Sequence record: MT161459.1
Reading direction: 5' to 3' (one strand)
Length of the DNA: 64,000 nt
In this document: in pieces, positions 2,355 to 49,389 of the stretch
Position numbering within the stretch: the first letter of the stretch is position 1
Layout of the letters: each line of letters starts with the position of its first letter
Notes under the pieces: generated by a model
Told to the model about the DNA's origin: nothing
Database searches by the model: none
The model's input: the letters and a program-made list of their open reading frames with translations, nothing else
Program-made: the position numbers and the translations under genes

Positions 2355-2359
2355 TATTC

Positions 2360-2605: not shown

Positions 2606-2614
2606 AAATTTTAG

Positions 2615-2691: not shown

Positions 2692-2694
2692 ATT

Positions 2695-2763
2695 TGGTTG
2701 CATTCTCGATAGCCGTCCTGAGAAAATGAGATCGGGACTAAGCTAAAGAACATAGTGCAACCA
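2695..2763 (+). ncRNA. tRNA-sized long hairpin ending in CCA
   Basis: TGGTTGCA/TGCAACCA terminal stem, inner TTCT/AGAA, TAGC/GCTA, GTCCTG/CGGGAC. Confidence 0.45.
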
Positions 2764-2771
2764 TTGCTTTT

Positions 2772-2863
2772 GGAAGTGTGCCAGAGAGGCTGAATGGGCC
2801 AGCTTGGAAAGCTGGTGACGGCCAACAGGTCGTCCGTAGGTTCGAATCCTACCACTTCCGCCA
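2772..2863 (+). tRNA. tRNA-Ser(GGA)
   Basis: GGAAGTG/CACTTCC, CCAGC-TTGGAAA-GCTGG, long variable arm, G73, CCA. Confidence 0.95.
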
Positions 2864-2906
2864 ATTATTCACGATCGTGCAGCAGCACGATGAGAGGTAT
2901 CAGTAG

Positions 2907-3338: not shown

Positions 3339-3343
3339 ACAAA

Positions 3344-3440
3344 GGAAGCGTGGCAGAGTCCGGCTTATTGCAACTGACTTGAAATCAGTCGACGGTGGCA
3401 ATCCCATCGTCCGTGGGTTCAAATCCTACCGCTTCCGCCA
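3344..3440 (+). tRNA. tRNA-Ser(TGA)
   Basis: GGAAGCG/CGCTTCC, ACTGA-CTTGAAA-TCAGT, long variable arm, CCA. Confidence 0.95.
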
Positions 3441-3446
3441 AACAAT

Positions 3447-3511
3447 GAGCTCTTAGGTTAGTGAAAACCGCTGGCTGTCCAATGCCAGAGACGCGTAAGC
3501 AGAGCTCGCCA
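3447..3511 (+). ncRNA. tRNA-like RNA with 8-nt anticodon loop and vestigial T arm
   Basis: Perfect GAGCTCT/AGAGCTC + G-CCA; D arm GGTT-AGTGAA-AACC; CTGGC-TGTCCAAT-GCCAG; T arm reduced to GC-GTAA-GC. Confidence 0.65.
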
Positions 3512-3516
3512 AACAC

Positions 3517-3601
3517 GCGGATGTGGTGAAATTGGCAGTCACACTAGATTTAGGATCTAGCGCCTTCGGGCATGTCGGTTCGAGTCCGACCATCCGCACC
3601 A
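3517..3601 (+). tRNA. tRNA-Leu(TAG)
   Basis: GCGGATG/CATCCGC, CTAGA-TTTAGGA-TCTAG, variable arm, CCA. Confidence 0.95.
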
Positions 3602-3608
3602 GAATTAC

Positions 3609-3634
3609 AAGAGCCCATATGGGCTCTTTTTGTT
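3609..3634 (+). terminator. intrinsic terminator after the tRNA run
   Basis: AAGAGCCC-ATAT-GGGCTCTT + U tract. Confidence 0.85.
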
Positions 3635-3637
3635 GCC

Positions 3638-3644
3638 CTAAATA
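3638..3644 (+). promoter_or_regulatory. putative late promoter CTAAATA (also 11669, 17479, 17872, 33568, 45395, 56370, 62010)
   Basis: Recurs in intergenic positions shortly upstream of starts; resembles T4 gp55 late promoter TATAAATA. Confidence 0.6.
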
Positions 3645-3662
3645 CAAGAAAAGGAGATCGTA

Positions 3663-4052
3663 ATGGACTTTGCAAACTTTTCTAGTACACAGTCTAAGTC
3701 ACCGGCCATCGGTAATCTCATTACCAAGTTGCTAAAGAGTGTTCCGTACGTTCACCACGAGCATCTGACTACTACGTCATACGAACGTCATATCACCCTT
3801 CAACAGTATTACGAAGGGATGCCAGGAGTAGTCGATACGCTAGCGGAAGCTAGTATTGCTCGTGGGTATCCACAGAGTTTCGATGCTCAGTTCAATCTGA
3901 TATCATTCGAGCAACTCTTAAACGACGCGATGTCGGAGTGTAATGCAGTTCACAAGATTCTCGAGAAAGATGGTATGTGGGATCTGACCAATGCTCTGGA
4001 AGATATCATGACCTTCATTTCATCCGTACAGTACAAATTGCGTTTGAAATAG
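3663..4052 (+). CDS. ferritin/Dps-like four-helix protein
   Basis: HHEHL...YERH..LQQYYE....D.LAE ferritin-like pattern; AGGAG RBS. Confidence 0.65.
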   Translation: MDFANFSSTQSKSPAIGNLITKLLKSVPYVHHEHLTTTSYERHITLQQYYEGMPGVVDTLAEASIARGYPQSFDAQFNLISFEQLLNDAMSECNAVHKILEKDGMWDLTNALEDIMTFISSVQYKLRLK

Positions 4053-4081
4053 TTGACTAAGCGGGTTATCCATGAGATGAT
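4053..4081 (+). promoter_or_regulatory. sigma70-like early promoter
   Basis: TTGACT-17-GATGAT. Confidence 0.55.
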
Positions 4082-4092
4082 CTGCTTTATAA

Positions 4093-4169
4093 GGCCCCTT
4101 ATCATAATCGGTTAGTGGAGCGTCCTCATAAGGCGTAACGTCTCGGTTCGAGTCCGAGAGGGGCCACCA
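4093..4169 (+). tRNA. tRNA-Ile2(CAT, lysidine type); Met less likely
   Basis: GGCCCCT/AGGGGCC-A-CCA acceptor as in enterobacterial Ile2; loop CTCATAA. Confidence 0.8.
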
Positions 4170-11720: not shown

Positions 11721-11855
11721 ATAATACCGCGATCGAGTAGCTCAATGGTAGAGCAACGTAAAATGCATCCTGTCAAGGATGAATTCTGCAATCAAATCGC
11801 CTGTTAAGCCGTAGGTTGTGTGGTTCGAATCCGCGCCTCGATCGCAGTATTATTT
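11721..11855 (+). ncRNA. tRNA-Asn(GTT)-derived RNA with 40-nt insertion in the anticodon stem and extended acceptor stem
   Basis: GATCGAG/CTCGATC acceptor, GCTC-AATGGTA-GAGC D arm, ACG[40 nt]GC-CTGTTAA-GCCGT, T loop TTCGAAT, no CCA, flanks ATAATAC/GTATTAT pair. Confidence 0.75.
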
Positions 11856-14712: not shown

Positions 14713-15421
14713 GATCATGAAGCCGTTCGAAGGTCGCCATTATGGTGGACTTGAGATCTACTATGCTAGTTGCAAGGCGTTTGATGTGTTATTCGATAAT
14801 CCGTGGAAGAGGTCAATAGACGACGTTCAACGAGAAATCATCAAGTACAAGGCTCGTCCTTATCGCTGCACTCCTATGCCCGCTCGCAATCGCCAGTATC
14901 GAAATGTGGTAGCCGTTACACTTCCGGATATGTCGTACGTTATTGAGAAGCTGTATGGCAAAGTTGTGCTGAATGGAAAGACCATCAAACAATGGCTGAG
15001 TATATTCCGCCAAACTGGCCCGCTGAATCATCTGGCACGAAATCTATTCCAGTACAGCGGTCGTCATAGTATCGGAGTAAACGCTCAACGTTGCACTCAG
15101 GCTCTACACGACTTTATGCACGCTAGCTGTCTAGCTATGTTCCAAGACGGTCGGGGATTCCCAGTCTCAGCATCGCACAACACCATCTATTGGGTCGCAG
15201 ATCACGTCATCGACATCGATACTGTAGACTTTCACGATCTAGTAGTCGGATTCGACAACTTTGTCACATCTCGTGGGGCGTTAGTAGTCGGATTCGATAT
15301 GTGCCAAACTGCGTTCGGTCAAATGGAAACGGTTACTATGTTCGGGTTTGGACCCAAGATCACTATCGAATCGTGGATGCACTCCATCCAATTTGAACAA
15401 CCACAAATAAAGGTACAATGA
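14684..15421 (+). CDS. hypothetical protein
   Basis: 245-aa ORF, AGGAG RBS. Confidence 0.7.
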   Translation: MSVEIEKAIEIMKPFEGRHYGGLEIYYASCKAFDVLFDNPWKRSIDDVQREIIKYKARPYRCTPMPARNRQYRNVVAVTLPDMSYVIEKLYGKVVLNGKTIKQWLSIFRQTGPLNHLARNLFQYSGRHSIGVNAQRCTQALHDFMHASCLAMFQDGRGFPVSASHNTIYWVADHVIDIDTVDFHDLVVGFDNFVTSRGALVVGFDMCQTAFGQMETVTMFGFGPKITIESWMHSIQFEQPQIKVQ

Positions 15422-23435: not shown

Positions 23436-24422
23436 ATGTCCCAACAACTGAACGTTATCATGAAGACCGTGTTTGGTTCGCACCTCTACGGCCTCAGCAC
23501 TCCAGAGTCGGATATGGATTTCAAAGGAGTGTTTATCCCGACAGCTCGAGAGATCATCTTGGGTGGTCGTGACGTATACAACGTATCGACTGGCGGTAGT
23601 GGCAAGAACACTGCCGAAGATACTGATACTGAAATGATGAGCCTACGTCAGTTCCTGAAACTGGCTTTCAAAGGCGAGACTATGTGCATCGATATGCTCC
23701 ATGCACCTAGTCACCACTTGGTAGAGACGACTGGATTGTGGGAGTTCATCCACGATCATCGCGAGATGTTCTACACGACCAAGATGGACGCCTTCCTAGG
23801 CTATGTGCGGAAGCAGGCAACAAAGTACGGCGTCAAAGGTACACGTCTGGCTGCTCTCGAGCGTGTCATGACTGTGATCAAAAGTGTTCCAGCCGATCAG
23901 CATGGTTACAAACTGCGCAGCTTCGTGGAGTTCCTGCCGAAGGACGAATTCACATTCTGTGGTGCGGAAGTGTCACGAACTGGCGAAACTGTATCGTTCT
24001 ACGAGGTACTTGGTCGCAAATACCTGTATGGGATCAAATTCTCTGAATTTGCTCAACAGGTGCAAAAGATCTGGGACGAGTATGGCGATCGAGCTCGTAA
24101 GGCCAAAGAGCAGGTGGGCGTAGACTGGAAGGCACTCTCCCACGCTGTGCGTGGTGGCGAGCAGCTTCTAGAGATCTATCAGACTGGCGATCTCAACTTC
24201 CCGCTGAAACATCGCGAGTATATCCTCGACGTCAAGTTGGGTAAGCGGAGTCTCGTGGATGATGTTCAGCCGTACCTCGAGTACCTGACTGATGAGGTCG
24301 AGAAAGCTGCTGTCATAGCTGGAAAGAACGGTATGCGCGACAAAGTTGATGTAGACTTCTGGAATAAGTTTCTGTACGATACTTATGTCGATGTGATCAA
24401 ATCCACTAAGGAGTTTGTATGA
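23436..24422 (+). CDS. Pol-beta superfamily nucleotidyltransferase (RlaP-like, T4 NrdC.11-like)
   Basis: FGSHLYGLSTPESDMDFKGVF (GS..YG...SD.D), DWKALSHAVR. Confidence 0.85.
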   Translation: MSQQLNVIMKTVFGSHLYGLSTPESDMDFKGVFIPTAREIILGGRDVYNVSTGGSGKNTAEDTDTEMMSLRQFLKLAFKGETMCIDMLHAPSHHLVETTGLWEFIHDHREMFYTTKMDAFLGYVRKQATKYGVKGTRLAALERVMTVIKSVPADQHGYKLRSFVEFLPKDEFTFCGAEVSRTGETVSFYEVLGRKYLYGIKFSEFAQQVQKIWDEYGDRARKAKEQVGVDWKALSHAVRGGEQLLEIYQTGDLNFPLKHREYILDVKLGKRSLVDDVQPYLEYLTDEVEKAAVIAGKNGMRDKVDVDFWNKFLYDTYVDVIKSTKEFV

Positions 24423-25950: not shown

Positions 25951-27528
25951 ATGAACATGAAAAAAGCACAAATGGTCAAGCACTTGCGTGCACTGTTCCG
26001 TGGCGATGCAACTCTGCAAGCTGAGTACAAGAATTCGGACAATTTCATCCGAGCGGTACTCCAGCTGGGTAAAACTGACCCATTCAAACGGAATCTGTGC
26101 ACATCGAGCGACTCTTACAAAGCTAGTCATCCGAAGCAGTTCCCTCGCGGAACTACTCACACCAGCTATTACGTAGAAGCTCGTGGCGGCAAGTTTGATC
26201 AGATCATGGTACAAGGTTTGCATGGTGTTGCGCGTATCCTGGAGCAGGGTGTGACCGTCGAAGACGTCGAGCGTGCCAACAAATTATTCAAATCTCACTT
26301 CGGTCGTGACATCTTCGTATACAAGCAATGGTTGCGAATCGCTACCGAGTTTGACGGCAAAATCCCAGTCAATATGTTTGGCGTGAAAGAATGCACCGTT
26401 CTTCCGGTCAAGAACGCGATGGCTGTGTTGGAAAACACTCACGAAGACTACTACTGGTTGCCTGGTCACTTCGAACCGCTGTTGATGCGCGGTATCTGGT
26501 ATCCAACTGCGGTTGGTACAATCAGCTTCCACGTCAAAGAAGCCTTGCGTCGTGCATTCGAACGCACCTCTGATCTGACTGGTGCCGATCTGGACTTCGT
26601 TCTGAAAACTCGTCTGCACGACTTCGGTCTGCGTGGAGTGAGCTCAGAAGAATCTGCTCGCATTGGCGGTCTGGCCCATCTGATGAACTTCATCGGTACT
26701 GATACTGTAGAAGCTCTGATCATGGCCCAAGATCTGTACAATATGGCCGAAGAATTTGCTGCCGGTATCAGTATCCCAGCTCGGGAACACAGCACTACCA
26801 TCAGCTACGGCGATGACGGTGAATTGACTCCGGATCAGGAAGACGAAGCGTTCGAAAACAGTATCGATCAGTATGGCGATGGCGTTTACGCTTGCGTAAT
26901 GGATTCTAAGGACTTCGAAGCTGCAGTTCTGCGGGTATCTCGTAAGTTCAAGGCAAAGATCCTGGATATGGGTGGCGTATTCGTATTCCGTCCGGACTCG
27001 GGCGATATGTTTGCTAACATCAAATACGCTCTCGAGACTCTGTCCGAGGAGTTTGGCTACACTGTGAACAGCAAAGGGTTTAAGGTTCTGCATCCGAGTG
27101 TTCGCATCATCCAAGGTGATGGTCTGAATAAGGTCCACGATATTGTGGCAGTGACCGACTGCGTCGAAGATCTGGGATATAGCGTCGAGAACATCGCATT
27201 TGGTATGGGCGGCGGTCTGCTGCAACAAGTCAACCGCGACACTCACAAAGTCGCTATGAAAATGAGCGCACTGAAAGTGAATGGCGTATGGCGTAAGGTT
27301 CGTAAGACTCCGAAGGGAGCTGAGTGGAAGACCTCCAAAGCTGGCCGTCTCCGCCTGGTGAAGATCGACGGCGAGTATCGCACTGTGGACATCCTGGAGT
27401 TCCCAGAGTATGAGCACGTCAACGAATACGTGCAGTATCTGAGATCTGGTTATGGTATGTTCGAGTACAATGAGGAACTGTTCCTACGGATTCGCGCTTA
27501 CTCCGACACCCAAAGTCTGACTGCATAA
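25951..27528 (+). CDS. nadV: nicotinamide phosphoribosyltransferase family enzyme (Nampt/NadV; Namat not excluded)
   Basis: DSYKASH, LHDFG.RGVSS, GTDT, EHST, RPDSGD, IIQGDG, KTSKAG. Confidence 0.88.
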   Translation: MNMKKAQMVKHLRALFRGDATLQAEYKNSDNFIRAVLQLGKTDPFKRNLCTSSDSYKASHPKQFPRGTTHTSYYVEARGGKFDQIMVQGLHGVARILEQGVTVEDVERANKLFKSHFGRDIFVYKQWLRIATEFDGKIPVNMFGVKECTVLPVKNAMAVLENTHEDYYWLPGHFEPLLMRGIWYPTAVGTISFHVKEALRRAFERTSDLTGADLDFVLKTRLHDFGLRGVSSEESARIGGLAHLMNFIGTDTVEALIMAQDLYNMAEEFAAGISIPAREHSTTISYGDDGELTPDQEDEAFENSIDQYGDGVYACVMDSKDFEAAVLRVSRKFKAKILDMGGVFVFRPDSGDMFANIKYALETLSEEFGYTVNSKGFKVLHPSVRIIQGDGLNKVHDIVAVTDCVEDLGYSVENIAFGMGGGLLQQVNRDTHKVAMKMSALKVNGVWRKVRKTPKGAEWKTSKAGRLRLVKIDGEYRTVDILEFPEYEHVNEYVQYLRSGYGMFEYNEELFLRIRAYSDTQSLTA

Positions 27529-27949: not shown

Positions 27950-28234
27950 ATGAAGAAGACGTTCATGGAAATCTTGGTCGAGTCTCTAGCAGCAGCTGAC
28001 AAGGAGTTCGTTGGCAAATTCGCGGTTCAGGATAAGGACGGAACGTTCCACTTCTTTGCAGATCGACCTAGTCGGAAGCTCAAGACTCATCATTGGGATT
28101 CTACGATGGGACCAATTGATAGCTTGATTGGCACGCAATTGTATTCAGATTGGCATGGATCTCGTCTGAGTCGAGTTGGATACGATAGCTACACTGCGTA
28201 CATGCTTCGTAAGGAGAATAATGAAGACGTTTAA
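27950..28234 (+). CDS. hypothetical protein (xAVQDxDG motif)
   Basis: FAVQDKDG motif common in small phage proteins. Confidence 0.6.
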   Translation: MKKTFMEILVESLAAADKEFVGKFAVQDKDGTFHFFADRPSRKLKTHHWDSTMGPIDSLIGTQLYSDWHGSRLSRVGYDSYTAYMLRKENNEDV

Positions 28235-28712
28235 GAAGGTGCTGTTTCTGGATATGGACGGCGTCATTCACAATGATGCGTCCTACATGAAATATGGTCA
28301 AATGATCGACTTTGGAGGAGTCAAGATCCTATCGAAGTTGATACTGGAACAAGATCTTGGGATAGTATTCAGTTCCACTTGGAGAATTGGATTGGATCGC
28401 GACGTTGTATCAGACTATCTGAAATTGTGCGGATTCCCACCTAGTGTCCTGCACGAGGACTACAAGACTCGAGATCTGATCGGAGAGCACCGCGGTTCGC
28501 TGATCCAGGAATGGCTGGACGCTCATCCAGAAGTTGAGCAATACGTCATAGTGGATGACGATGACGACATGCTGCCCAGTCAGACTGAGAACTTCATCCA
28601 CGTAGATGGGATGAATGGATTTGGAGTTCGGGACTTCTACAGAGCAGAGAGTATCTTCAAAGGATATCGAACTGGGCAGTGCAAAGAGCACATCAACATG
28701 GGTAGGAAATAA
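28221..28712 (+). CDS. HAD-family phosphatase (HAD_SAK_2-like)
   Basis: VLFLDMDGV, VFSSTWR, RG..I..WL, YVIVDD. Confidence 0.85.
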   Translation: MKTFKKVLFLDMDGVIHNDASYMKYGQMIDFGGVKILSKLILEQDLGIVFSSTWRIGLDRDVVSDYLKLCGFPPSVLHEDYKTRDLIGEHRGSLIQEWLDAHPEVEQYVIVDDDDDMLPSQTENFIHVDGMNGFGVRDFYRAESIFKGYRTGQCKEHINMGRK

Positions 28713-32619: not shown

Positions 32620-32652
32620 TTGCAAGGATTGTATTGACGATGTATAATCCTT
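32620..32652 (+). promoter_or_regulatory. sigma70-like promoter of queE with inverted repeat
   Basis: TTGCAA-17-TATAAT; AAGGATTGTA/TATAATCCTT. Confidence 0.7.
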
Positions 32653-32678
32653 CTCTATTCAACGTAAAGGTAAAAAGC

Positions 32679-33545
32679 ATGGCTCGTGAAATTACTTATT
32701 CAGAGGAATTCTTTAGCTTCCAGGGAGAAGGCCAATATACCGGTCGTCCAACTGTGTGGCTTCGTCTCCATGGTTGTAATCTGGAGTGTCCTGGCTTCGG
32801 TCGTTCTAACCCAGCTCGTCCTGATCTGTACGCAGACCAAGATCCGTTGGGCGACATCGATGTCAAGATGATCAATTCGTACGCAGATCTGCCGATCCCA
32901 GAGTTTGGTTGCGACTCCAGTTATTCGTGGTCTCGTAAATTCAAACATCTGGCTCACAAAGACACTGCAACGGATCTGGTTGACAAGCTCGTGGCACTAG
33001 CTCCTGGTGGGTTCTTTGGGGATAACATCCACTTCTGTATCACTGGCGGTGAGCCGATGATGAACCAGAACGCAGTGATCGATATCTTCGAAGAGCTGAT
33101 GGCCCGCGGAGAGCTTCCGAAGTTTGTGACTATTGAGACTAATGGTACTCGTCCACTGAAGCAAGATATGATCGATCTGATCGGTCGCGTCAAGCGTGAA
33201 GGTACTGAATGGTTCTGGTCTATCAGTCCGAAATTGCTTCACGTATCCGGTGAACAGAACGCGAAAGCAATCCGTCCGGAAGTAGTAGCTCAATACTTCG
33301 ATGTATCTGAGACTGGCCAGTTGAAGTTCGTGTGCAACGGTACTCCAGAGTGCTGGCACGAATTGGAATGGGCAGCTGATCAGTTTGATCGCGTATATCC
33401 GATCTGGGTTATGCCTGTTGGCGCTCGTCTGGAACACCAGGAGTCCAGCAGCATCGCTGGGATCAGCAACGAAGCACTTCGTCGTCGTTATAATGTAGCT
33501 GCTCGCGTTCACGTTTATGTGTACGGCAACTCTATTGGCACCTGA
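32679..33545 (+). CDS. queE: 7-carboxy-7-deazaguanine synthase (radical SAM)
   Basis: F.SFQGEG..TGRP.V.LRL.GCNL.C....CDS.YSW, ITGGEP, TIETNG, SISPK. Confidence 0.9.
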   Translation: MAREITYSEEFFSFQGEGQYTGRPTVWLRLHGCNLECPGFGRSNPARPDLYADQDPLGDIDVKMINSYADLPIPEFGCDSSYSWSRKFKHLAHKDTATDLVDKLVALAPGGFFGDNIHFCITGGEPMMNQNAVIDIFEELMARGELPKFVTIETNGTRPLKQDMIDLIGRVKREGTEWFWSISPKLLHVSGEQNAKAIRPEVVAQYFDVSETGQLKFVCNGTPECWHELEWAADQFDRVYPIWVMPVGARLEHQESSSIAGISNEALRRRYNVAARVHVYVYGNSIGT

Positions 33546-33597
33546 TCGATGGGTCTCTTCGGAGACCCTAAATAACGGACCGACAAAGGAGAATTAC

Positions 33598-33810
33598 ATG
33601 AAGACGTTCGATGAATACCTCGCCGAGGCAAAAGGGTTGTCTACTGCAGATAAGCAGAAGATTGCTAAAGATATCGTCAAAGAGATGTCCGACGATGATG
33701 ACGTGAATGAGCTGATTGGGATGTACCTGGAAAATACTCCAGGCGCAGAGCACGCTACCGATCGGGATCATAAAGACATCCTGAAGATGATCGAGAAGCT
33801 GCGCAAGTAA
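33598..33810 (+). CDS. putative internal head protein
   Basis: MKTFDEYLAEA resembles T4 capsid-targeting leader MKTYQEFIAE; CTAAATA upstream. Confidence 0.6.
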   Translation: MKTFDEYLAEAKGLSTADKQKIAKDIVKEMSDDDDVNELIGMYLENTPGAEHATDRDHKDILKMIEKLRK

Positions 33811-33952
33811 GTTTACAGCGTAGCGATATCGCAGTAAGATAGACAGACAAAGTCATTCTCGTTGTGTTGTCCGAAAGGTTTTGAACGAGCAAGTACGGAT
33901 GCCCTTGACTCTTCCGCATCCACATTAACCAACCTGAAGAAAGGAATTTTAA

Positions 33953-34618
33953 ATGAAAAACAACGCTGAATTGGGCCGTGCAGTAAACCAACATCTGACC
34001 GATCTGGGCATCAACACTCCCACCACCGATCTGCTCTACGTAGGTCGCGATGAGAAGGTTGAGAAGATCAAAGGTCATATGAAGTCCATCCTGGAAACTC
34101 TGGGTCTGGATCTGACAGATGACAGTCTGGAAGAAACCCCAATTCGTGTGGCGAAGATGTTCGTCGACGAGATCTACTCTGGTCTGGTACCGGATACCTT
34201 CCCGAAGTGCACCACTGTAGAAAACAAATTCGCTAACCATAACGAATTTGTCATGGAGCGTGATATCACTTTGTTCTCTGACTGCGAACATCACCTGCGT
34301 ACCATTCATGGCGTTGCTCATGTAGCATACGTGCCGACTGATAAGGTTCTCGGTCTGAGTAAGTTGAACCGTATCGTTCAATACTTCGGTCAGCGGCCGC
34401 AGGTTCAGGAACGACTGACTCAACAGATTGCTCACGCAATTCAGTTCATCACTGGTTCTGATCACGTCTGCGTAGCTATCGATGCTAAGCATATGTGTGT
34501 CAGTCAACGCGGTATCAAGGACTCCAAGAGCTCCACTGTTACTCTGGCTGCTCTGGGCAAGTTCGGCGAGGCGGATAGCAATCTGCGTCGCGAGTTTATG
34601 GCTGCTACTAAGCAGTAA
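33953..34618 (+). CDS. folE: GTP cyclohydrolase I
   Basis: ETP.RVAKM, CEHH, LGLSKL.R, RPQVQERLT, H.C...RG. Confidence 0.95.
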   Translation: MKNNAELGRAVNQHLTDLGINTPTTDLLYVGRDEKVEKIKGHMKSILETLGLDLTDDSLEETPIRVAKMFVDEIYSGLVPDTFPKCTTVENKFANHNEFVMERDITLFSDCEHHLRTIHGVAHVAYVPTDKVLGLSKLNRIVQYFGQRPQVQERLTQQIAHAIQFITGSDHVCVAIDAKHMCVSQRGIKDSKSSTVTLAALGKFGEADSNLRREFMAATKQ

Positions 34619-34623
34619 CGACA

Positions 34624-34652
34624 AAGGCCACCTTCGGGTGGCTTTTCTTTTG
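34624..34652 (+). terminator. intrinsic terminator
   Basis: GCCACC-TTCG-GGTGGC + U tract. Confidence 0.85.
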
Positions 34653-34683
34653 GAAATTATTTCATTTTATTTTGTTTAAGCGG

Positions 34684-34727
34684 TTGTCCGAGACATCATA
34701 GTATCAGATACTATCTTCATTGGGACG
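34684..34727 (+). promoter_or_regulatory. early promoter with 23-bp box shared with 54421-54443
   Basis: TTGTCC-17-GATACT; CAGATACTATCTTCATTGGGACG identical in both; 15 bp also at 28764. Confidence 0.7.
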
Positions 34728-34766
34728 GAAGACCGAACCACAAACACAACCACAGAGAGATACATT

Positions 34767-35210
34767 ATGACCACCATGACCCAAATCCAAGTTGTTGAAG
34801 CCTTCGCTACCACTACCCTGACCAAGACTGCTTTCGCTGCAGAACACGGTATCAGTACTCGTACTCTGGGTCGTTGGGTAGAGAAGTTCAACGGCGTAAC
34901 TGCTAACGATGCCGAAGAAGTGATCGAAGTTCTGACCGCTACCGCCGATCCGGTTGTTGTAGTCGAAGATACTCCGGTAGTAGAAACCAACGACGCGATC
35001 GTCGTACCGGTTGTTGAAGAAGTGATCGAGACTCCGGTAGTAGTTGAAGAGAAGACCAACAAACGTGCTCTGGCTGCTGCTGCATACTTCGGTAACGTTG
35101 GTATGAAGCGTAAGGATCTGATCGCGATGATGGTTGCTACCTGCGGTCTGACTGCTGCTGGTGCTTCCACTTACATCTCCAACTTCAAAACCGGTAAGTG
35201 GACTGCATAA
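34767..35210 (+). CDS. putative DNA-binding protein (HTH N-terminus + family B C-terminal domain)
   Basis: FAAEHGISTRTLGRW; RKDLIAMM...GLTAAGASTYISNFKTGKW. Confidence 0.7.
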   Translation: MTTMTQIQVVEAFATTTLTKTAFAAEHGISTRTLGRWVEKFNGVTANDAEEVIEVLTATADPVVVVEDTPVVETNDAIVVPVVEEVIETPVVVEEKTNKRALAAAAYFGNVGMKRKDLIAMMVATCGLTAAGASTYISNFKTGKWTA

Positions 35211-35215
35211 GGCAC

Positions 35216-35262
35216 TTTAGATCGGCTGTAGGACGGTGTATAATCGATCCTACAGCCGATCT
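35216..35262 (+). promoter_or_regulatory. promoter with -10 in the loop of a 15-bp perfect inverted repeat
   Basis: TTTAGA-17-TATAAT; AGATCGGCTGTAGGA/TCCTACAGCCGATCT. Confidence 0.6.
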
Positions 35263-35351
35263 GATAGATTGCTCGGATCAAGAATAAAACGGTTGTATAC
35301 GCAGAATGAAGTGTGTACAATCTCTTTTCATTACGTATAAAAGGTAAAGTT

Positions 35352-35744
35352 ATGAATCAGGTATTCAAGAAGAAAGCGTTTGTCTACTGTTCCTTCCAGC
35401 TTGAAGGTTATCACATGTATCCTGGCGCAGATGTCAATCCATCGACGGCGACTGGCGACTATCTGGACGTTTCTCATCTGGGCGATCGACATTTCCATTA
35501 TTTCAACGTACGAGTGTGGATAGAAGTCAAGCACGAAGAGCGCGATATCGAGTTTATTCAGCTGCGTCGTCGTATCGTAGCTGAATATCAGAAGGGCGGT
35601 CTGGAGATGAACGGTAAGTCCTGCGAGACTCTATCCGATGAGCTGTTCAAAACCCTGAATGAATGGTATCCGAACCGCGACATCAAGATCGATATCTCCG
35701 AAGAAGGTATCAATGGCGCGTATGTAGAATACAGCGTAGCGTAA
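35352..35744 (+). CDS. QueD-like T-fold protein, DpdL (CDG decarboxylase)-type motif
   Basis: GYH.YP, LGDRHFHYF (LxxxHxHxF rather than CxxxHGH), RDIEF, SCE...D, ISEEG.NGA. Confidence 0.7.
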   Translation: MNQVFKKKAFVYCSFQLEGYHMYPGADVNPSTATGDYLDVSHLGDRHFHYFNVRVWIEVKHEERDIEFIQLRRRIVAEYQKGGLEMNGKSCETLSDELFKTLNEWYPNRDIKIDISEEGINGAYVEYSVA

Positions 35745-35797
35745 TGTCAACGGCTCTCTTCGGAGAGCCTTCTTAAACCAAATCCAAAGGATAACGA

Positions 35798-36670
35798 ATG
35801 TCTATCAATTTCTGTCACATTTCTCCGACTCCACATCTGTCTCAACTGACCGCATTCAATGGCAGTCATCTGCTTCTGGCTCACCTGATCGAAGAAGATC
35901 CTCATTACCAGGAGTTCTACGCAAAGCTGGATGACGGTCGCGAGAAGATCATGGACAACAGCGGCTTTGAGATGTTCAAGATGGGTCGCGAAATGTACAA
36001 TCCATCCAAACTGGTTCAGATGGCTGCTTCTGTGCACGCTGACATCATCGTACTGCCAGACTATCCGATGCAACCAGCTCACGTCACGATGGATGCTGCT
36101 GCGAAGATGCTGCCTGTCTTCAAAGACAACGGCTTCGGTGCTTTCTACGTACCACAATCCGAAGTAGGCGATCTGGAAGGTTATCTGACCTCCATGAATT
36201 GGGCTCTGAACAATCCGGACATCAAAGTCATCGGGCTTAGCATTCTGGGTTGTCCGATCGCTCTGGGCATGAAGGAGCAGAAGTTCGACAGTCTGGATCA
36301 GATTGACGGCGCATACAAAATGCAACGCTTCCTGAGTCGTTGGAAGATTCTCAGCATCATGAAAGAACGTGGCATGCTGGATGAACGAGCTGTCAAGAAG
36401 TTCCACTGCTTGGGTCTCGTTGATGGGCCTAATGAAATCGATCTGCTCCAAGAGTTTGTGCCATATATCCGTAGTTGGGATACCAGCTCAGCAGTGTGGT
36501 TGGGTCTGAGCGGTAACATGACCTACGATAGCTCTCCGACTGGTCTGCGCAACGGCAAGTACGAGAAAGAAGTTGACTTTGACTTCTCTACCTCTGACGC
36601 TGATCGTATCAACAAGGCAATCAGCAATATCCAGTTTATCAACAGCAAGCCTGGTATCACCAAACTCTAA
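35798..36670 (+). CDS. dpdA: TGT-fold 7-deazaguanine transglycosylase (DpdA-like)
   Basis: IMDNSGFE, VLPD, FHCLG, WDTSSA motifs of TGT/DpdA barrels; embedded in que cluster. Confidence 0.65.
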   Translation: MSINFCHISPTPHLSQLTAFNGSHLLLAHLIEEDPHYQEFYAKLDDGREKIMDNSGFEMFKMGREMYNPSKLVQMAASVHADIIVLPDYPMQPAHVTMDAAAKMLPVFKDNGFGAFYVPQSEVGDLEGYLTSMNWALNNPDIKVIGLSILGCPIALGMKEQKFDSLDQIDGAYKMQRFLSRWKILSIMKERGMLDERAVKKFHCLGLVDGPNEIDLLQEFVPYIRSWDTSSAVWLGLSGNMTYDSSPTGLRNGKYEKEVDFDFSTSDADRINKAISNIQFINSKPGITKL

Positions 36671-36678
36671 GGAACCAA

Positions 36679-37248
36679 ATGTCAATGCATCTCATTGGCA
36701 TCAGCGGATTCAAGCGCAGCGGTAAGGATACCGCTGCTGACTTCATTCAGCTGATGGCAGAAAAACACAGAATCCCATCGAATCGGTTTGCGATTGCAGA
36801 TACTGTCATCGAGAAAGCGAGTGCAGTATTTGGATTCAAACGGGAAGATTGGGACAAGCTGAAAGTCAACGGCGTAATGTCTATTGGCGATGGTAGCATC
36901 TATCGCGATGTCCGAGATGTTGTCCGAGACTTCGGAATGGCTCTCATCGATGCAGATGAGACGTACCTGATTCGGAACGCAGAGGCCAAACTCCAACCAT
37001 TCATGCTAAACATCGTCACTGACGTTCGATTCGATCGAGAGATTGATATGATCAAACGTAATGGCGGACTGCTGATCAAGATCGTGCGGCCAGGAGTTGG
37101 GTCGGATGGTCATGTCACCGAGCAGCATCTGGATGACGACAAATACGATGCTATCGTCGTAAACGATGGCGATCTCGATCAATTGGAACGACGCGTAGCT
37201 AATGTGTGTCGGTGCCACTACAAAACTATGTTCAAGGACAACAAATGA
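36679..37248 (+). CDS. deoxynucleoside monophosphate kinase (T4 gp1-like)
   Basis: LIGISGFKRSGKDT, VTDVRF..E, GG.LIKI.R. Confidence 0.85.
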   Translation: MSMHLIGISGFKRSGKDTAADFIQLMAEKHRIPSNRFAIADTVIEKASAVFGFKREDWDKLKVNGVMSIGDGSIYRDVRDVVRDFGMALIDADETYLIRNAEAKLQPFMLNIVTDVRFDREIDMIKRNGGLLIKIVRPGVGSDGHVTEQHLDDDKYDAIVVNDGDLDQLERRVANVCRCHYKTMFKDNK

Positions 37249-37781
37249 TTCACATCAAAGGCGAAACCTCCAAATCCAAAGTGACTGGCGTAGAGTCGCG
37301 TCACATTCAACCAAACGCTGTTGACATTACCGTCGACAAGATCTTCGCGTTCTCCAAACCGGAGCTCGGCGAACTGTCTAACGTGGTAGTCATCTCAAAC
37401 AACCAAAAGCAACATCGCAGAGTGGAACAACTGCTTCCAATTCCTGGTTCTGATGGCGAATGGGCAGATGGCGAATACTGGATCCTGCCAGAAGGGGTTT
37501 ACGACTGTCTGTCTAGCTCCGAGGTTACCATAGCCGAAGGTGAAGCAGCGTTCGTCATTCAACGCAGCACGTTGAATCGCAACGGTCTTCGTTGCACTTC
37601 TGGGCTGTATGACAGCGGATTCAGCGGGAAGATCGGATTCAGTCTGACCGTGCAAGGTGGTCCAGCCAAGATCTATCGTGGCGTGGCATTGTGCCAACTG
37701 TTGACTTTCCAGGCTGAGACTCTGGGGCTGTACAATGGCAGCTACGGAACTGGCAAAGAAGGCGAAGCGCGTTACCAATGA
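37245..37781 (+). CDS. trimeric dUTPase / dCTP deaminase family
   Basis: QPNAVD, RSTLNRNG, YDSGFSG, CQL, YNG.Y. Confidence 0.8.
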   Translation: MIHIKGETSKSKVTGVESRHIQPNAVDITVDKIFAFSKPELGELSNVVVISNNQKQHRRVEQLLPIPGSDGEWADGEYWILPEGVYDCLSSSEVTIAEGEAAFVIQRSTLNRNGLRCTSGLYDSGFSGKIGFSLTVQGGPAKIYRGVALCQLLTFQAETLGLYNGSYGTGKEGEARYQ

Positions 37782-37870
37782 TTTTTAAACCTCCTTCGGG
37801 AGGTTTTTTGTTGCCTTGGATTCTGAATCATGTAAGATCTCCATATCGAAACAAACATCTGGAGAGTAAA

Positions 37871-38059
37871 ATGATTTCATTCAACGTAGCTCTGTTCGCA
37901 TTCTTGTGTTTCATGACATTCGTGAGCGCGATCTATACAGTTTGGTGGTCGTCTAACGGTCTGCAAAATTGTATGATCAAAGTTACCTGGGCATGTATCT
38001 TTGGCGCGAATGTGTACTTCGTAGCTTCGGGTCGCATCCTGACTCTGATTGCAGCGTAA
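37871..38059 (+). CDS. small membrane protein
   Basis: Hydrophobic, GGAG RBS. Confidence 0.6.
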   Translation: MISFNVALFAFLCFMTFVSAIYTVWWSSNGLQNCMIKVTWACIFGANVYFVASGRILTLIAA

Positions 38060-38071
38060 GGGGTTACGATC

Positions 38072-38287
38072 GTGGATAAGTTAGACAGTTCGATTATTCA
38101 GATCGCGATATTCCTAGTGGCATTTTGCACCTGGTTGTACATCTGGGACATGATGGCAATATGTCGTCGTAAGAACACTGATCGGAATCTCGATTTCGCG
38201 GAAGCTATCTGGGATACTATCGTTGTACTGATCAAGATTGCTATCATTGCAATCCCAACTTACATCTTCATCCACCGAGGAGCTTAA
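38072..38287 (+). CDS. small membrane protein
   Basis: Two TM segments. Confidence 0.6.
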   Translation: MDKLDSSIIQIAIFLVAFCTWLYIWDMMAICRRKNTDRNLDFAEAIWDTIVVLIKIAIIAIPTYIFIHRGA

Positions 38288-38289
38288 AA

Positions 38290-38490
38290 ATGCCAATGTT
38301 TTTGTGCACCATCGCTATTAACGTAGCGGCGTTCTTGGGGACTGTAATCACAGTATTTTGGATATGTTCTCTCCGAGATGACGCTAGCGCTAAAAATTGG
38401 CCTGGCGCATTTACATCGCTAGCGTGTGCTGGGATCATGTTCACATTCACATTCCTGATCGTTAAAATCATTATCAAATATCAACTGTGA
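38290..38490 (+). CDS. small membrane protein
   Basis: Two TM segments, GGAG RBS. Confidence 0.6.
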   Translation: MPMFLCTIAINVAAFLGTVITVFWICSLRDDASAKNWPGAFTSLACAGIMFTFTFLIVKIIIKYQL

Positions 38491-38497
38491 GAATATT

Positions 38498-39448
38498 ATG
38501 ATAGAAAGAAATTGGACTATTTGGCATACCATCGAAGAACATCAATCCCACGACGTTGATGTGAAGAAGTACATCTTCAAGTCTCCGGATGCTATTGCTG
38601 AGGCTGTACTTTACAAATACGGATCGTATGAAGAGCGTACTGTAATGTGTATCAGCACCCAAACCGGTTGCCCGATGGGCTGCACATTCTGCGGTACCGG
38701 CAAGTTCTTTGGTCGCAATCTGACTACCCAAGAGATTGTGGATCAAGTCGCGTACATGATCGATGTGAACAACATCGATGCAGAGAACGTCAAGAAGCTG
38801 CAGATCATGGTCATGTCAATGGGCGAGCCGTTGCTCAATATGCCAAACGTGGCAGAGGCTTTCTTTACCTTCAATCGTTGGTACAAGAATGCTGCTCTGT
38901 TGGTATCTACATCTGCGCCGAAGACCCACGATGGTTGGGATCAGTTCTTCGAGTTGGCGAGCTGTCTCCCGCAAGTAGGTCTGCAGTTTAGCGTTCACGA
39001 GAGCACCGACGAAGCTCGCGATCTGATCATGCCAATGAAAGCGAAGTTGAATCTGGAACAGATTGCACTCCGCGGAGAATACTTCCATGAGTTGACTGGT
39101 CGTCGTCCGTACTTCAACTACTGCGTGGGCGAACACAATAACTCCGCAGAAGATGCGCAGCGTCTGGCTGGTCTCTTCGATCCAACCATATGGGAAGCTA
39201 CTCTGAGCGTGATCTGTGAAGCGGATGTTAACATGAAGGACGCTGTTCAAGATCAATTTGAAATGGTATCCGCGTTCAGTTCCAACCTGGTTGAGCTTGG
39301 TTTCAACACCCGCGTGTTCAATCCAAGTGGACAAGGGGATGTTGGGGGTGGGTGTGGGCAGTTGTGGTCGGTTCAAGAATACGCCAAGGCCAACCCACAA
39401 TCCTTCAAGCAATCTGCCGGCAATAAGATCGCCTGTCGCCAAGTATAA
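38498..39448 (+). CDS. RlmN/Cfr-family (class A) radical SAM methyltransferase
   Basis: CISTQTGCPMGCTFCGTG, MSMGEPLLN, SVH, C-terminal GGGCGQL; both extra catalytic Cys present. Confidence 0.85.
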   Translation: MIERNWTIWHTIEEHQSHDVDVKKYIFKSPDAIAEAVLYKYGSYEERTVMCISTQTGCPMGCTFCGTGKFFGRNLTTQEIVDQVAYMIDVNNIDAENVKKLQIMVMSMGEPLLNMPNVAEAFFTFNRWYKNAALLVSTSAPKTHDGWDQFFELASCLPQVGLQFSVHESTDEARDLIMPMKAKLNLEQIALRGEYFHELTGRRPYFNYCVGEHNNSAEDAQRLAGLFDPTIWEATLSVICEADVNMKDAVQDQFEMVSAFSSNLVELGFNTRVFNPSGQGDVGGGCGQLWSVQEYAKANPQSFKQSAGNKIACRQV

Positions 39449-39452: not shown

Positions 39453-39487
39453 TTGTCGAGGACATCGAGCTAAGGTAAGATGTCCTC
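39453..39487 (+). promoter_or_regulatory. early promoter with inverted repeat
   Basis: TTGTCG-17-TAAGAT; GAGGACATC/GATGTCCTC. Confidence 0.6.
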
Positions 39488-39523
39488 ATTGAAACGAATC
39501 CAACCAATCTTAGAGGTAGTATC

Positions 39524-39994
39524 ATGTCACACATCACTGAATTCGCAATGGGTCAAATGGCAGTCAAGTTCATCCGCGAACGTAACCGTAACACTCCAAC
39601 CCTGACCATTATCGATCACATCAAAAACCATCCGGACTTGGGTCCAGATGACTTGGTGGAGTACAAGTCCGGTATTCCTCGTTGGTACGAGATTCTGCAG
39701 AACGCGTTCGTCCGTCAAATGGATAACCACGACGGGATCATCCGTACTCCATCAGGCTTTGACGTATCCGAAGAATACAAACTCAAACAACGTGTCAACG
39801 ACGAGGTAGTGAAAATGCAAGGTACTTTCAAGTTTCCAGAAGGCCATACCCGTCAGTCTCTGTTCAGTCTGGCTCAAAAAGCTGGTATCAATCCTGCTGA
39901 CATCAACGACTTCATCACCGAAGCGTTTGAAGATAGTGAGGTCGTCACCGAAGCTGATGTCCAGACCCTCCTCTCTCAATATAAGGATCTCTAA
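39524..39994 (+). CDS. hypothetical protein
   Basis: GAGGT RBS. Confidence 0.7.
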   Translation: MSHITEFAMGQMAVKFIRERNRNTPTLTIIDHIKNHPDLGPDDLVEYKSGIPRWYEILQNAFVRQMDNHDGIIRTPSGFDVSEEYKLKQRVNDEVVKMQGTFKFPEGHTRQSLFSLAQKAGINPADINDFITEAFEDSEVVTEADVQTLLSQYKDL

Positions 39995-40353
39995 TGATTA
40001 AAGTCGGTACGAATGTGCGAGTCGTAGAAGGCTCGCGCAAATCCAAGCACGTAGGTAAAGTGGGCGTGGTGGTCGGATCTCGGATGGTTAAGCCGAATGG
40101 GATCCGGTACGAACTCTTCAAAGTGGAGAGCGACAACATTACGTTCGAGCTAACTGCCAAGAGTCTGGTCAGCCTGGATGTAGCTATCGGTATCGATAAG
40201 ATCGAAGCTCCCAAGGTATATCAGGTCCAGATCCCAGATCGCGTACCGCCGTATATCTCTCCGCTGATCGAATATAAGGTCGCGAAGGTCATCGCAGAGC
40301 GTCTGATCGAAGACGGTATCAAGTTCCAACTGATGCAGGCAGTTACCTTCTGA
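39994..40353 (+). CDS. KOW-motif protein
   Basis: IKVG..V.V..G...K.VGKVG.V. Confidence 0.6.
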   Translation: MIKVGTNVRVVEGSRKSKHVGKVGVVVGSRMVKPNGIRYELFKVESDNITFELTAKSLVSLDVAIGIDKIEAPKVYQVQIPDRVPPYISPLIEYKVAKVIAERLIEDGIKFQLMQAVTF

Positions 40354-40430
40354 TGTTGTGATACGCTAAAGGATTCTGGTATAATAGAATCCTTTGTCGA
40401 AATCATAACTAATATAATGAGGTTAGTATC

Positions 40431-40925
40431 ATGAACGGTCGCAGAATTCGCAGAGTACGTCCGAGTTCGATTACAAAGTACAATCGACAACTACAGGACA
40501 TCAATGACAGCATCGCCGAATGTCAGCGTATTCTCACAGCCGTTGAGCGTTCCGTCCTTCCTGGAGATTGGCTCAGCGGACGAATCGAAGACACCTACCA
40601 GTATAAAACGTGGCGCACAGTAGGTTGTCTCAACTTAACAGATCATTTCATCATTCGATATATGGAACGAGTCCTCAAGATCCGATTCAATGAAGATGCA
40701 ATCAAACTCGAGTACGGCGGATACGCAGAGGAAGATGCAGATCGAGCTAAGCTCCGTTATGCTGATGATCATCTGATGATCAATGACGATTTCAAGGCCA
40801 GCATCCGCGAGTTCGTCAAGAATCCGCCGACTCACGTTCGAATTGTTCGGAAGGAGGATCGTGTGATTACCCTCCTGACGTTCGATGACGATGATTGGAA
40901 AGTGGTTGACTACATCTCAAAGTGA
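40431..40925 (+). CDS. hypothetical protein
   Basis: GAGGT RBS; LTDHFIIRYMERV motif. Confidence 0.7.
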   Translation: MNGRRIRRVRPSSITKYNRQLQDINDSIAECQRILTAVERSVLPGDWLSGRIEDTYQYKTWRTVGCLNLTDHFIIRYMERVLKIRFNEDAIKLEYGGYAEEDADRAKLRYADDHLMINDDFKASIREFVKNPPTHVRIVRKEDRVITLLTFDDDDWKVVDYISK

Positions 40926-49008: not shown

Positions 49009-49389
49009 ATGAAGAAGATGTGTGTCAAGAATATCAAAGCTGGTAAAACTGTGTACTACGTCCATGCACTAGGCGAGAACACATCTGTGACCAAGTACAT
49101 CGTGACTGGTCGTCCGAAGTTATATCGGTTTAAGCACGTAAAGAGCTTGGCGGATAGTCTGTTTGTACCATCTCGCTACGTATTCCGAGATGGAACCGTC
49201 GCGAAGATCAATAGCGACTTCAGTCTGGTGGATGCCAACGTACAGCGTCAGAACCATTACAACAAGCATCGTCTGTTCTTTAGTCGTAAAGCTGCCAATC
49301 GCTACGTTGAGCTGTGCAAGCACCATAACATCAATCTGGTTCACAGCGGTGACGACGCCGATCCGTTCTGGGACTATCGCTATGACTAA
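49009..49389 (+). CDS. hypothetical protein
   Basis: AAGGAG RBS. Confidence 0.65.
   Translation: MKKMCVKNIKAGKTVYYVHALGENTSVTKYIVTGRPKLYRFKHVKSLADSLFVPSRYVFRDGTVAKINSDFSLVDANVQRQNHYNKHRLFFSRKAANRYVELCKHHNINLVHSGDDADPFWDYRYD

Follow-up and report, generated by a model that had tools for sequence, protein, structure and literature searches.

The locus studied here raises the question of what a phage-encoded relative of the methylases RlmN and Cfr acts on. The window, i.e. the whole stretch of 64,000 nucleotides (nt) that we analysed, comprises positions 1-64000 of record MT161459.1, the 218-kb genome of the T4-like Aeromonas phage Ahp1_CNU-2021 (Straboviridae; hereafter Ahp1). The gene in question, AHP1_741, is an uninterrupted open reading frame (ORF) of 316 amino acids (aa) on the plus strand (38498-39448), whose ATG start codon lies 7 nt past the stop codon of a preceding small ORF. 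The record annotates it only as "hypothetical protein AHP1_741". Our comparisons place its product in a sister family of RlmN and Cfr that is mostly viral, and a survey of its relatives revealed a recurrent association with genes for the salvage or reconstitution of nicotinamide adenine dinucleotide (NAD+). We tentatively propose a substrate related to NAD+.

We compared AHP1_741 with family models and known structures. The best family match was the RlmN model TIGR00048 (E of 1.4e-37, 129.5 bits); Cfr models matched with E values of 1e-24 to 1e-26, and Pfam PF04055 with 4e-8. The RlmN structure 3rf9 in the Protein Data Bank (PDB) matched residues 12-290 of the query (E of 4e-20), and Cfr was matched by phmmer (E of 2e-17). 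PHROGs gave only a weak match, to the unnamed family phrog_24834 (E of 5e-14). In the HMMER alignment to Escherichia coli RlmN, C51 and C286 fell on C118 and C355, respectively, the two methyl-transfer cysteines. An AlphaFold model built with 80 homologues reached a predicted local distance difference test score (pLDDT) of 94.2 and a predicted template modelling score (pTM) of 0.92. Foldseek searches with this model retrieved RlmN 3rfa (E of 1.9e-20, template modelling (TM) score of 0.73) and Cfr 9p0p (E of 8e-14), and the next-best radical S-adenosylmethionine (SAM) enzyme, SuiB (E of 1.5e-6), lay 14 orders of magnitude behind RlmN. The features by which the superfamily is recognized were all found, namely CX3CX2C in a partial TIM-barrel core, both mechanistic cysteines and a fold closest to RlmN/Cfr. 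The gene and its parts are located as follows.

38498-39448, plus strand: AHP1_741, RlmN/Cfr-like class-A radical-SAM methylase gene without the N-terminal domain (ORF, record annotation, TIGR00048, PDB, AlphaFold2 and Foldseek).
38528-38617, plus strand: residues 11-40, three-stranded beta extension ahead of the radical-SAM core, as in RlmN/Cfr (strands E11-16, E22-29 and E32-40 in the AlphaFold model).
38648-38650, plus strand: codon of C51, equivalent to C118 of E. coli RlmN, which resolves the enzyme-substrate crosslink (alignments; C-x6-CxxxCxxC in 119/119 close full-length homologues).
38669-38692, plus strand: C58-x3-C62-x2-C65, predicted [4Fe-4S] ligands for SAM cleavage (motif, Pfam and RlmN alignments, homologue conservation).
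38819-38830, plus strand: M108-G-E-P111, SAM-binding motif common to RlmN/Cfr (GMGEP), which in AHP1_741 reads MSMGEP at residues 106-111 (alignment A1, homologues).
39314-39367, plus strand: residues 273-290, loop VFNPSGQGDVGGGCGQLW with C286, equivalent to RlmN C355, the methyl carrier (codon 39353-39355, within GGGCGQL; alignment).

The first-pass annotation of this stretch, made from the letters alone, had noted CxxxCxxC, both catalytic cysteines and MGEP and had classed the protein as an RlmN/Cfr-type radical-SAM methylase. The residues concerned (C58/C62/C65, C51, C286 and 106-111) are indeed present, and the class was right by the TIGR00048, PDB and Foldseek matches. Sequence and model comparisons thus confirm AHP1_741 as an intact RlmN/Cfr-type radical-SAM protein. 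In alignment A1, G109 was invariant, and M108, E110 and P111 were conserved in at least 90%. Among the 119 full-length close homologues, which were picked by overall similarity, MGEP was retained in 118, CGQL in 115 and GGGCGQLW in 96. The retention of the catalytic motifs in 115 to 119 of the 119 homologues indicates purifying selection on catalysis. With all catalytic parts kept, AHP1_741 is predicted to be an active class-A radical-SAM C-methylase.

Its scores, however, stayed far below the curated cut-offs of both enzymes, with 129.5 vs 290 bits (TIGR00048) and 85.3 vs 633 bits (PRK11194) for RlmN, and 84-91 vs 468-550 bits (NF000424, TIGR04432 and PRK14453) for Cfr. The RlmN_N domain (HhH2, PF21016) was not matched in AHP1_741 or in the longer relatives scanned, including seven of seven in-family ones, while the E. 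coli control scored 110 bits. The beta extension is retained in AHP1_741, but the HhH2 domain expected before it is absent, the alignment starting at RlmN residue 83. In Cfr, the HhH2 domain precedes the beta extension, and the N-terminal domain is anchored on H91/H92, the counterparts of the tRNA acceptor stem and D-arm, and is crucial for rRNA binding (10.64898/2026.02.27.707579). The divergent flanks mentioned in the first-pass annotation therefore reflect a missing RlmN_N domain and a different C-terminus. A hidden RlmN_N domain in longer family members was ruled out by the domain scan; of the extra-long ORFs, those of the surveyed loci L071, L072 and L079 result from over-extension of the reading frame, and those of L097 and L037 lie on the wrong strand.

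The two groups also separated in a quick maximum-likelihood search with 122 sequences. RlmN of E. coli and Bacillus, Cfr(C), Cfr(D) and 50 canonical-length representatives formed one clade of 54 rows, with a support of 98 in the Shimodaira-Hasegawa-like approximate likelihood ratio test (SH-aLRT). AHP1_741 lay outside this clade in the unrooted tree, in a separate group of 54 rows, mostly proteins of 280-320 aa. The phylogeny that had been suggested as a check on the RlmN/Cfr assignment thus puts the phage protein outside a clade that unites both enzymes. AHP1_741 is acidic, with an isoelectric point (pI) of 5.0 and a net charge of -13, and the median pI of its family is 5.96 vs 8.77 in the canonical RlmN/Cfr clade. 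The canonical median was still 8.75 after the first 70 residues had been dropped. Two arginines that contact RNA are replaced: R206 of E. coli RlmN is alanine in the family, and R344, equivalent to Cfr R327, which contacts the A2503 ribose, is phenylalanine or tyrosine. These positions are basic in 96-98% of the canonical clade vs 0-2% of the family. In the RlmN crystal structure, R206 pairs with tRNA G29 (summarised in PMC5130265). The loop before the methyl-carrying cysteine reads VRKTRGDDIDAACGQL in RlmN and FNPxGQDDIGGGCGQLW in the family, a family-specific form in which F-N-P-x-G-Q stands in place of the basic RKTRG of RlmN. Because the cut-offs are missed, the HhH2 domain is absent, the protein lies outside the clade and is acidic, and two RNA-contact arginines are replaced, AHP1_741 is, judged by its sequence, neither RlmN nor Cfr but a member of a sister family that is mostly viral and has no RNA-gripping N-terminal domain. 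On the same grounds, the family appears to keep the chemistry of RlmN/Cfr but not their mode of holding RNA. Nothing in AHP1_741 suggests a resistance function.

The family is large and mostly viral. Metagenomes yielded more than 120 sequence clusters at an identity of at least 54%, all of about 310 aa and often on contigs of 60-370 kb, and a search of IMG/VR with the family alignment A2 gave at least 303 relatives. The ESM Atlas clusters of the family were 82-100% viral, and the cellular spread was thin, with about 90 places in 185,579 species-representative genomes. Isolates with the gene include 137-kb Vibrio phages such as 496E54-1 (64% identity), Salmonella phage Arash, whose 181-kb genome encodes a virion RNA polymerase (56%), and, at 49%, two Stenotrophomonas phages (ANB28 and BUCTxx99) and Xanthomonas phage JGB6; an uncultured phage of 462 kb also carries it. 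Within the family, identity is 45-68% across phages of unrelated architecture. The Aeromonas host RlmN homologue is only ~29% identical to AHP1_741, which is therefore not a recent capture of the host gene.

Class-A radical-SAM methylases have, to our knowledge, been characterised only in the form of RlmN and Cfr, each of which modifies adenosines in RNA. Among the major immune strategies of bacteria is the depletion of NAD+, which phages have recently been found to counter by NAD+ reconstitution. We surveyed the neighbourhoods (±8-10 kb) of 148 family loci from phage isolates, metagenome assemblies, IMG/VR and genome contigs. The ORFs were clustered all-against-all and annotated afterwards, and loci whose methylases were at least 85% identical were collapsed, leaving 113 lineages. 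NAD genes were counted as any NAD gene except a lone NUDIX. A tblastn count in the genome contigs, which gave NAD genes in 3 of 72 loci, was an undercount due to divergent queries; all-against-all clustering raised the figure to 14 of 56 lineages. The clusters found most often within 5 kb of the methylase gene were the following.

NAMPT/NAPRT family: 29 of 113 lineages, the commonest.
Isochorismatase family (PncA-like): 13 of 113.
NMNAT-Nudix: 12 of 113.
NUDIX: 12 of 113.
PRPP-synthetase/Adps-like: 8 of 113.
Glutamine-dependent NadE: 6 of 113.
NadE: 6 of 113.
Small NMN/NaMN adenylyltransferase (NaMNAT): 6 of 113.
Two unannotated small-protein clusters: 6 lineages each.
RtcB and metallophosphoesterase: these reach 5 lineages.

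An NAD gene lay within 300 nt of the methylase gene in 22 of the 113 lineages and within 3 kb in 36, the latter at similar rates in the two independently gathered sets (22/57 and 14/56 lineages). In the first survey, of 60 lineages, an NAD gene present in the flanks was within 1.5 kb in 17 of 22 cases (binomial p of ~1e-10 against uniform placement). The genes were often co-oriented, with some overlapping reading frames or a fusion. For comparison, NMNAT-Nudix homologues occurred in 460 of 50,697 phage records, and NARP1, one of the NAD+ reconstitution pathways (NARP), has been reported in ~4.3% of phages (PMC13464706). The association of the family with NAD+ salvage and reconstitution genes is statistically robust and previously unreported; literature searches for a radical-SAM partner of NARP or a phage RlmN/Cfr-like enzyme found nothing relevant, and the NARP papers searched name no such partner.

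The partners belonged to three types. NARP1-type partners (an Adps-like and Namat-like pair) were found in L002, L009, L011, L035, L054, L085 and L112, and NARP2-type partners (Nampt and Nmnat-Nudix) in L005, L007, L043, L075, L105 and others. Partners of the Preiss-Handler type (PncA-NAPRT-NadD-NadE) were found in L116, L135, L163 and the Saccharibacteria loci. The gene order was variable and the linkage was scattered over the methylase tree, with at least 14 changes; the sister leaves L005 and L002 differ in pathway type. The closest relatives of AHP1_741 (L002, L005 and L007) adjoin NAD genes. The gene is most deeply embedded in L163, from a metagenome-assembled genome (MAG) of Bacilli, whose methylase ORF overlaps both adjacent genes, the end of NAPRT and the start of NadE, in the order PncA-NAPRT-[methylase]-NadE-(small radical-SAM-like ORF)-NaMNAT-CinA/PncC-NAD kinase (NadK). 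The small radical-SAM-like ORF in this operon (L163 10833-11534) is a second one and encodes 233 aa. NAMPT-type genes were present in all three isolate genomes examined, i.e. Ahp1, Vibrio phage 496E54-1 (83-92 nt upstream of the methylase gene, which comes right after the Adps-like/Namat-like pair) and Arash (13 kb away). The two genes of Ahp1 are located as follows.

25951-27528, plus strand: NAMPT gene (annotation), 11 kb upstream of the methylase gene, 50% identical to the NAMPT that adjoins the L005 homologue.
Record positions 132607-133656, outside the window: NMNAT-Nudix gene.

Domain fusions pointed in a similar direction. In L025, the family member P0126, 45% identical to AHP1_741, has a NUDIX domain fused to its C-terminus, with NAMPT and NMNAT following directly. 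An ESM Atlas cluster of 520-aa Elusimicrobiota proteins, all of them (100%) with an isochorismatase domain, gave a whole-length match to the AHP1_741 model (TM score of 0.81). Distant relatives without the N-terminal domain included one phosphoribosyltransferase fusion, beside an adenosine/AMP deaminase gene on three contigs, and one HD dNTPase-like fusion. A length-restricted fusion search with P0189 returned mostly long canonical RlmN, largely eukaryotic, together with phosphoribosyltransferase and TsaD fusions; the isochorismatase fusion of the ESM Atlas was not recovered by that search. The ORF at L107 3836-6453 (also in L108 and L109) is always preceded by an adenosine/AMP deaminase gene, suggesting purine-salvage chemistry in another branch of enzymes. 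Two further observations concern the neighbourhoods. No NAD+ or other riboswitch was found in nine NAD-linked methylase loci or in the window, where only tRNAs were detected. In L012, a gene of the Acb2/Tad1-hairpin family (anti-CBASS/anti-Thoeris sponge type; 14950-15171) lies 4 kb downstream of the methylase homologue, as would fit counter-defence islands.

An NAD-related nucleotide is favoured as the substrate because the RNA-anchoring parts are lost, the surface is acidic, relatives are fused to nucleotide-handling domains and the genes keep company with NAD genes. We put the probability at roughly 0.4 that AHP1_741 acts in NAD(P)/adenine-nucleotide metabolism during infection, on a nucleotide-level adenine or pyridine-ring substrate related to NAD+. 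The likeliest reaction would be C-methylation of the adenine (or pyridine) ring of a substrate such as NAD+, nicotinic acid adenine dinucleotide (NaAD) or ADP-ribose. By analogy with the RlmN/Cfr mechanism, one SAM would methylate C286, and the 5'-deoxyadenosyl radical from a second SAM would take a hydrogen from the cysteine-bound methyl group to give a Cys-S-CH2 radical. This methylene radical would add to an electron-poor sp2 C-H of the heteroaromatic ring, at a carbon next to a ring nitrogen, and C51 would then resolve the covalent adduct and free the methylated product. In its most specific form, the proposal is that the family without the N-terminal domain comprises the first class-A radical-SAM methylases to act on a free nucleotide. 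They would C-methylate NAD+, or one of its precursors or breakdown products, on the adenine or nicotinamide ring, and the phages would then rebuild a methylated NAD+ that resists cleavage, or conversion into signals, by immune NADases (SIR2, TIR and similar). We consider this version unlikely as it stands.

Several observations weigh against an NAD-related substrate. In Ahp1 itself, NAMPT is 11 kb and NMNAT ~94 kb from the methylase gene, and about two thirds of the lineages lack an NAD gene within 3 kb. Phage accessory and anti-defence genes often cluster regardless of chemistry, so the neighbourhood is circumstantial. We know of no class-A radical-SAM methylase with a target other than an RNA adenosine, and a small-molecule substrate would thus be without precedent. 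The beta extension and the C-terminal loop, which hold the target nucleotide, are retained in AHP1_741, and of the 10 core positions at which at least 60% of canonical enzymes have Lys or Arg, the family keeps 7. The methylase gene of ANB28 lies inside or beside a tRNA cluster (at 295 nt), and those of L009, L011, L038 and L097 are 0.6-2 kb from clusters of 10-31 tRNAs (604 nt from a 31-tRNA cluster in L097, and ~1 kb from 28 tRNAs in L038). One distant relative without the N-terminal domain is fused to TsaD, a tRNA-A37 enzyme. Among the tRNAs of Ahp1, tRNA-His (A37 U38) and one tRNA-Asp (A37 C38) fit the determinants of RlmN.

These points could be accommodated if the enzyme were an RNA adenosine C-methylase that makes m2A or m8A (2- or 8-methyladenosine) at A37 of phage and/or host tRNAs, or in another stem-loop RNA, with a simplified recognition that can do without the N-terminal domain. 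Its purpose would be the tuning of decoding or the protection of tRNAs from anticodon nucleases, and the company of NAD genes would stem from a common counter-defence or host-takeover island without shared chemistry. The conserved fold and catalytic residues, in a superfamily whose known substrates are RNA adenosines only, are in line with such an activity, as are the ~27 tRNAs of Ahp1, the position of the gene within or beside a tRNA cluster in L033 as well as in the loci just named, and the genes for CCA-adding enzyme, RlaP, Rnl2 and RtcB near some loci, with RlaP and HAD_SAK_2 in the window. However, tRNA proximity was not above chance: a tRNA present in the flanks was within 1.5 kb in only 6 of 23 lineages of the first survey (p of 0.12), and proximity was therefore dropped as an explanation, though it is striking in a few lineages. 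E. coli RlmN recognizes tRNAs with A37 followed by a pyrimidine at position 38, requires the whole L-shaped tRNA and leaves a 17-mer anticodon stem-loop unmodified (PMC5130265). The phage protein has lost the HhH2 domain, R206 and R344 and carries a net charge of -13. A38, a block to RlmN in vitro, is present in the tRNA-Gln of the window and the tRNA-Glu outside it; besides the methylase gene, Vibrio phage 496E54-1 has only a single tRNA, Gly-UCC; and cellular copies in Saccharibacteria and the Bacilli MAG sit within NAD operons. The idea of tRNA or host rRNA methylation in the first-pass annotation is accordingly weakened by the loss of the HhH2 domain and the two arginines, and we regard tRNA or another stem-loop RNA as a serious contender, the likeliest of the alternatives to an NAD-related target. 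The host ribosome is much less plausible. Homology to RlmN and Cfr, and some public annotations of homologues as 23S rRNA (adenine2503-C2)-methyltransferase, would agree with a Cfr- or RlmN-type methylase that remodels the host ribosome during infection by modifying A2503. Against this stand the missed cut-offs for both families, the position outside the clade that holds RlmN and Cfr, the lack of the H91/H92-binding domain and the presence in the host of its own RlmN, the divergent Aeromonas homologue mentioned above. An A2503 methylase is thus unlikely.

The position of AHP1_741 in Ahp1 suggests yet another target, since the gene lies 0.7 kb downstream of a DpdA-like/dNMP-kinase/dCTP-deaminase-like operon and 4-5 kb from FolE and QueE-like genes.

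32640-33545: QueE-like gene, confirmed.
33953-34618: FolE gene, confirmed.
35798-36670: DpdA-like candidate, first labelled dpdA; no Pfam or PDB match, and a weak PHROG match to a family of unknown function.
36679-37248: deoxynucleoside monophosphate (dNMP) kinase gene.
37245-37781: dCTP-deaminase/dUTPase-like gene.
37787-37806, plus strand: strong intrinsic-terminator-like hairpin, AAACCTCC-TTCG-GGAGGTTT, with an 8-bp GC-rich stem followed by a T run (terminator scan).

A methylation of an sp2 carbon of 7-deazaguanine, as the free base or in DNA, would give Ahp1 a new DNA base, and the lost RNA-binding features are compatible with such a non-RNA substrate. Locus L054 also has FolE and QueE-like genes, within 9 kb. 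The link fails, however, because the genes do not co-occur in relatives. Deazaguanine-type genes lay within 10 kb of the methylase in 2 of 60 lineages, namely the window itself and L054, and no FolE, QueE-like or DpdA-like homologue was found in the complete genomes of Vibrio phage 496E54-1 and Arash (tblastn, E up to 0.01). The DpdA-like candidate has homologues in three other phages only, Vibrio D479, Rhizobium RHph_I1_18 and Vibrio Bakedbeans, none of which has a full-length copy of the methylase. The hairpin closes the DpdA-like/dNMP-kinase/dCTP-deaminase-like operon and parts it from the methylase gene, with small ORFs following. Furthermore, the 45-68% identity across phages of unrelated architecture implies a substrate common to all of them, which also counts against deazaguanine. 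The first-pass annotation had rightly described the linkage to the dpdA operon as loose, with a terminator and three small genes in between (three small ORFs both in the record annotation and in the ORF list). Its deazaguanine genes held up in part, as QueE-like and FolE were confirmed and the dpdA label is unverified. The role that it had suggested for the methylase with this pathway did not hold, and the lack of co-occurrence that it had itself named as speaking against the idea is what we found. The position of AHP1_741 beside the deazaguanine operon is probably fortuitous, and 7-deazaguanine is the least probable of the substrates considered here. We therefore judge both 23S rRNA A2503 and 7-deazaguanine to be unlikely targets. 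The probability left over by the NAD-related, RNA, A2503 and deazaguanine readings falls to something unforeseen. The deazaguanine-type module (32640-37781) also holds a helix-turn-helix (HTH) protein, and neither QueC nor QueD could be recognised in the scanned ORFs.

The tRNAs and RNA-repair genes of Ahp1 showed some further features. Window positions 19-4169 hold twelve of the ~27 tRNAs, and the others lie at the opposite end of the linear record (212445-218208). Several are marked pseudo in the record and are normal by ARAGORN and Rfam (e.g. Trp-CCA at 1907-1980 and Ser-GGA at 2772-2863). A weak tRNA-like element of 113 nt at 11731-11843, annotated as "tRNA-Pseudo", scored 31.2 bits with the Rfam tRNA model, just over the gathering score; its length exceeds that of a normal tRNA, and it may be interrupted or degenerate. 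The gene at 23436-24422, annotated as "thioredoxin", matched Pfam RlaP, an RNA-repair-pathway nucleotidyltransferase (E of 3e-13), and that at 28221-28712 matched the HAD domain of "Swiss Army Knife" RNA-repair proteins (HAD_SAK_2, E of 4e-19). Together with the CCA-adding enzyme and RNA ligase elsewhere in Ahp1, these two genes suggest an RNA-repair toolkit. In Arash (L021), ARAGORN found 25 tRNAs compared to 21 in the publication, and the annotated tRNA-Phe at 49173-49247 has the anticodon CUA ("Pyl") by ARAGORN, which makes it a possible amber suppressor.

In Ahp1, the methylase gene stands alone among unique small genes. The window neighbours at 39524-40925 and the small ORFs at 37871-38490 had no homologue adjoining any other family member, and they therefore provide no functional clue. 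The small ORFs (37871-38059, 38150-38287 and 38290-38490 in the record annotation) are hydrophobic and membrane-like, and the first two start earlier in the ORF list. The third ends 7 nt before the methylase start, so that co-translation is possible. A perfect 9-bp inverted repeat at 39460-39489 (GAGGACATC, 12 nt, GATGTCCTC) begins 12 nt past the methylase stop codon. It has no T run after it and its loop is too long for the terminator scan, and it may be a transcript-end or stability hairpin. One promoter-like site was noted ahead of the gene.

38440-38468, plus strand: promoter-like site TTCACA-17-TAAAAT, located within the preceding small ORF and 30 nt ahead of the start codon (consensus match only).

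The number of promoter-like sites in the region was not above the shuffled expectation.

What is new here is a large family, mostly viral and sister to RlmN and Cfr, that appears to have kept the chemistry, shed the RNA-anchoring parts and become embedded in three types of NAD+ locus. An unrecognised radical-SAM partner of the NAD+ pathways could point to new NAD chemistry, and methylated NAD+, if the proposal is true, would add a layer of chemical escape on top of the known NAD+ reconstitution pathways. If the target is RNA instead, the family could hint at a connection between tRNA modification and NAD-centred defence. The tempting link between the methylase and 7-deazaguanine DNA modification is removed as unsupported.

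A comparison with the known systems places these findings in context. AHP1_741 resembles RlmN (E. coli YfgB; 3RFA and 5HR7; m2A2503/m2A37) in its fold, the CX3CX2C motif, the GMGEP-type motif, the two cysteines and the beta extension, at an identity of ~25%. E105 of RlmN has its counterpart in E35, and R114 is kept, where Cfr has a tryptophan. It differs from RlmN in lacking the HhH2 domain (PF21016), in the replacements of R206 by Ala and of R344 by Phe/Tyr, in its acidity and in its position outside the RlmN+Cfr clade. Furthermore, its loop before the cysteine is one residue longer and has GGGC where RlmN has DAAC. The clinically important resistance enzyme Cfr shares with AHP1_741 the superfamily, the mechanism and the core fold. 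However, AHP1_741 has neither the N-terminal domain nor the elongated, positively charged alpha5/beta6 loop that distinguish Cfr, the m8A2503 resistance methylase (9P0P; 10.64898/2026.02.27.707579), and falls outside the Cfr clade; as to the loop, the insertion of Cfr(C)/Cfr(D) is absent from AHP1_741 in the alignment. The genomic contexts also differ, as E. coli rlmN lies in the context of ndk/rodZ/hisS, whereas that of the present family is phage NAD genes. NARP1 (Adps and Namat) and NARP2 (Nampt and Nmnat) (10.1101/2024.02.11.579819), as well as the Preiss-Handler enzymes PncA, PncB, NadD and NadE, are recurrent neighbours of the family. The described pathways need no radical-SAM enzyme to be complete, and the methylase shares no homology with any NAD enzyme; it is the gene context alone that suggests a role for it in the NARP and Preiss-Handler pathways.

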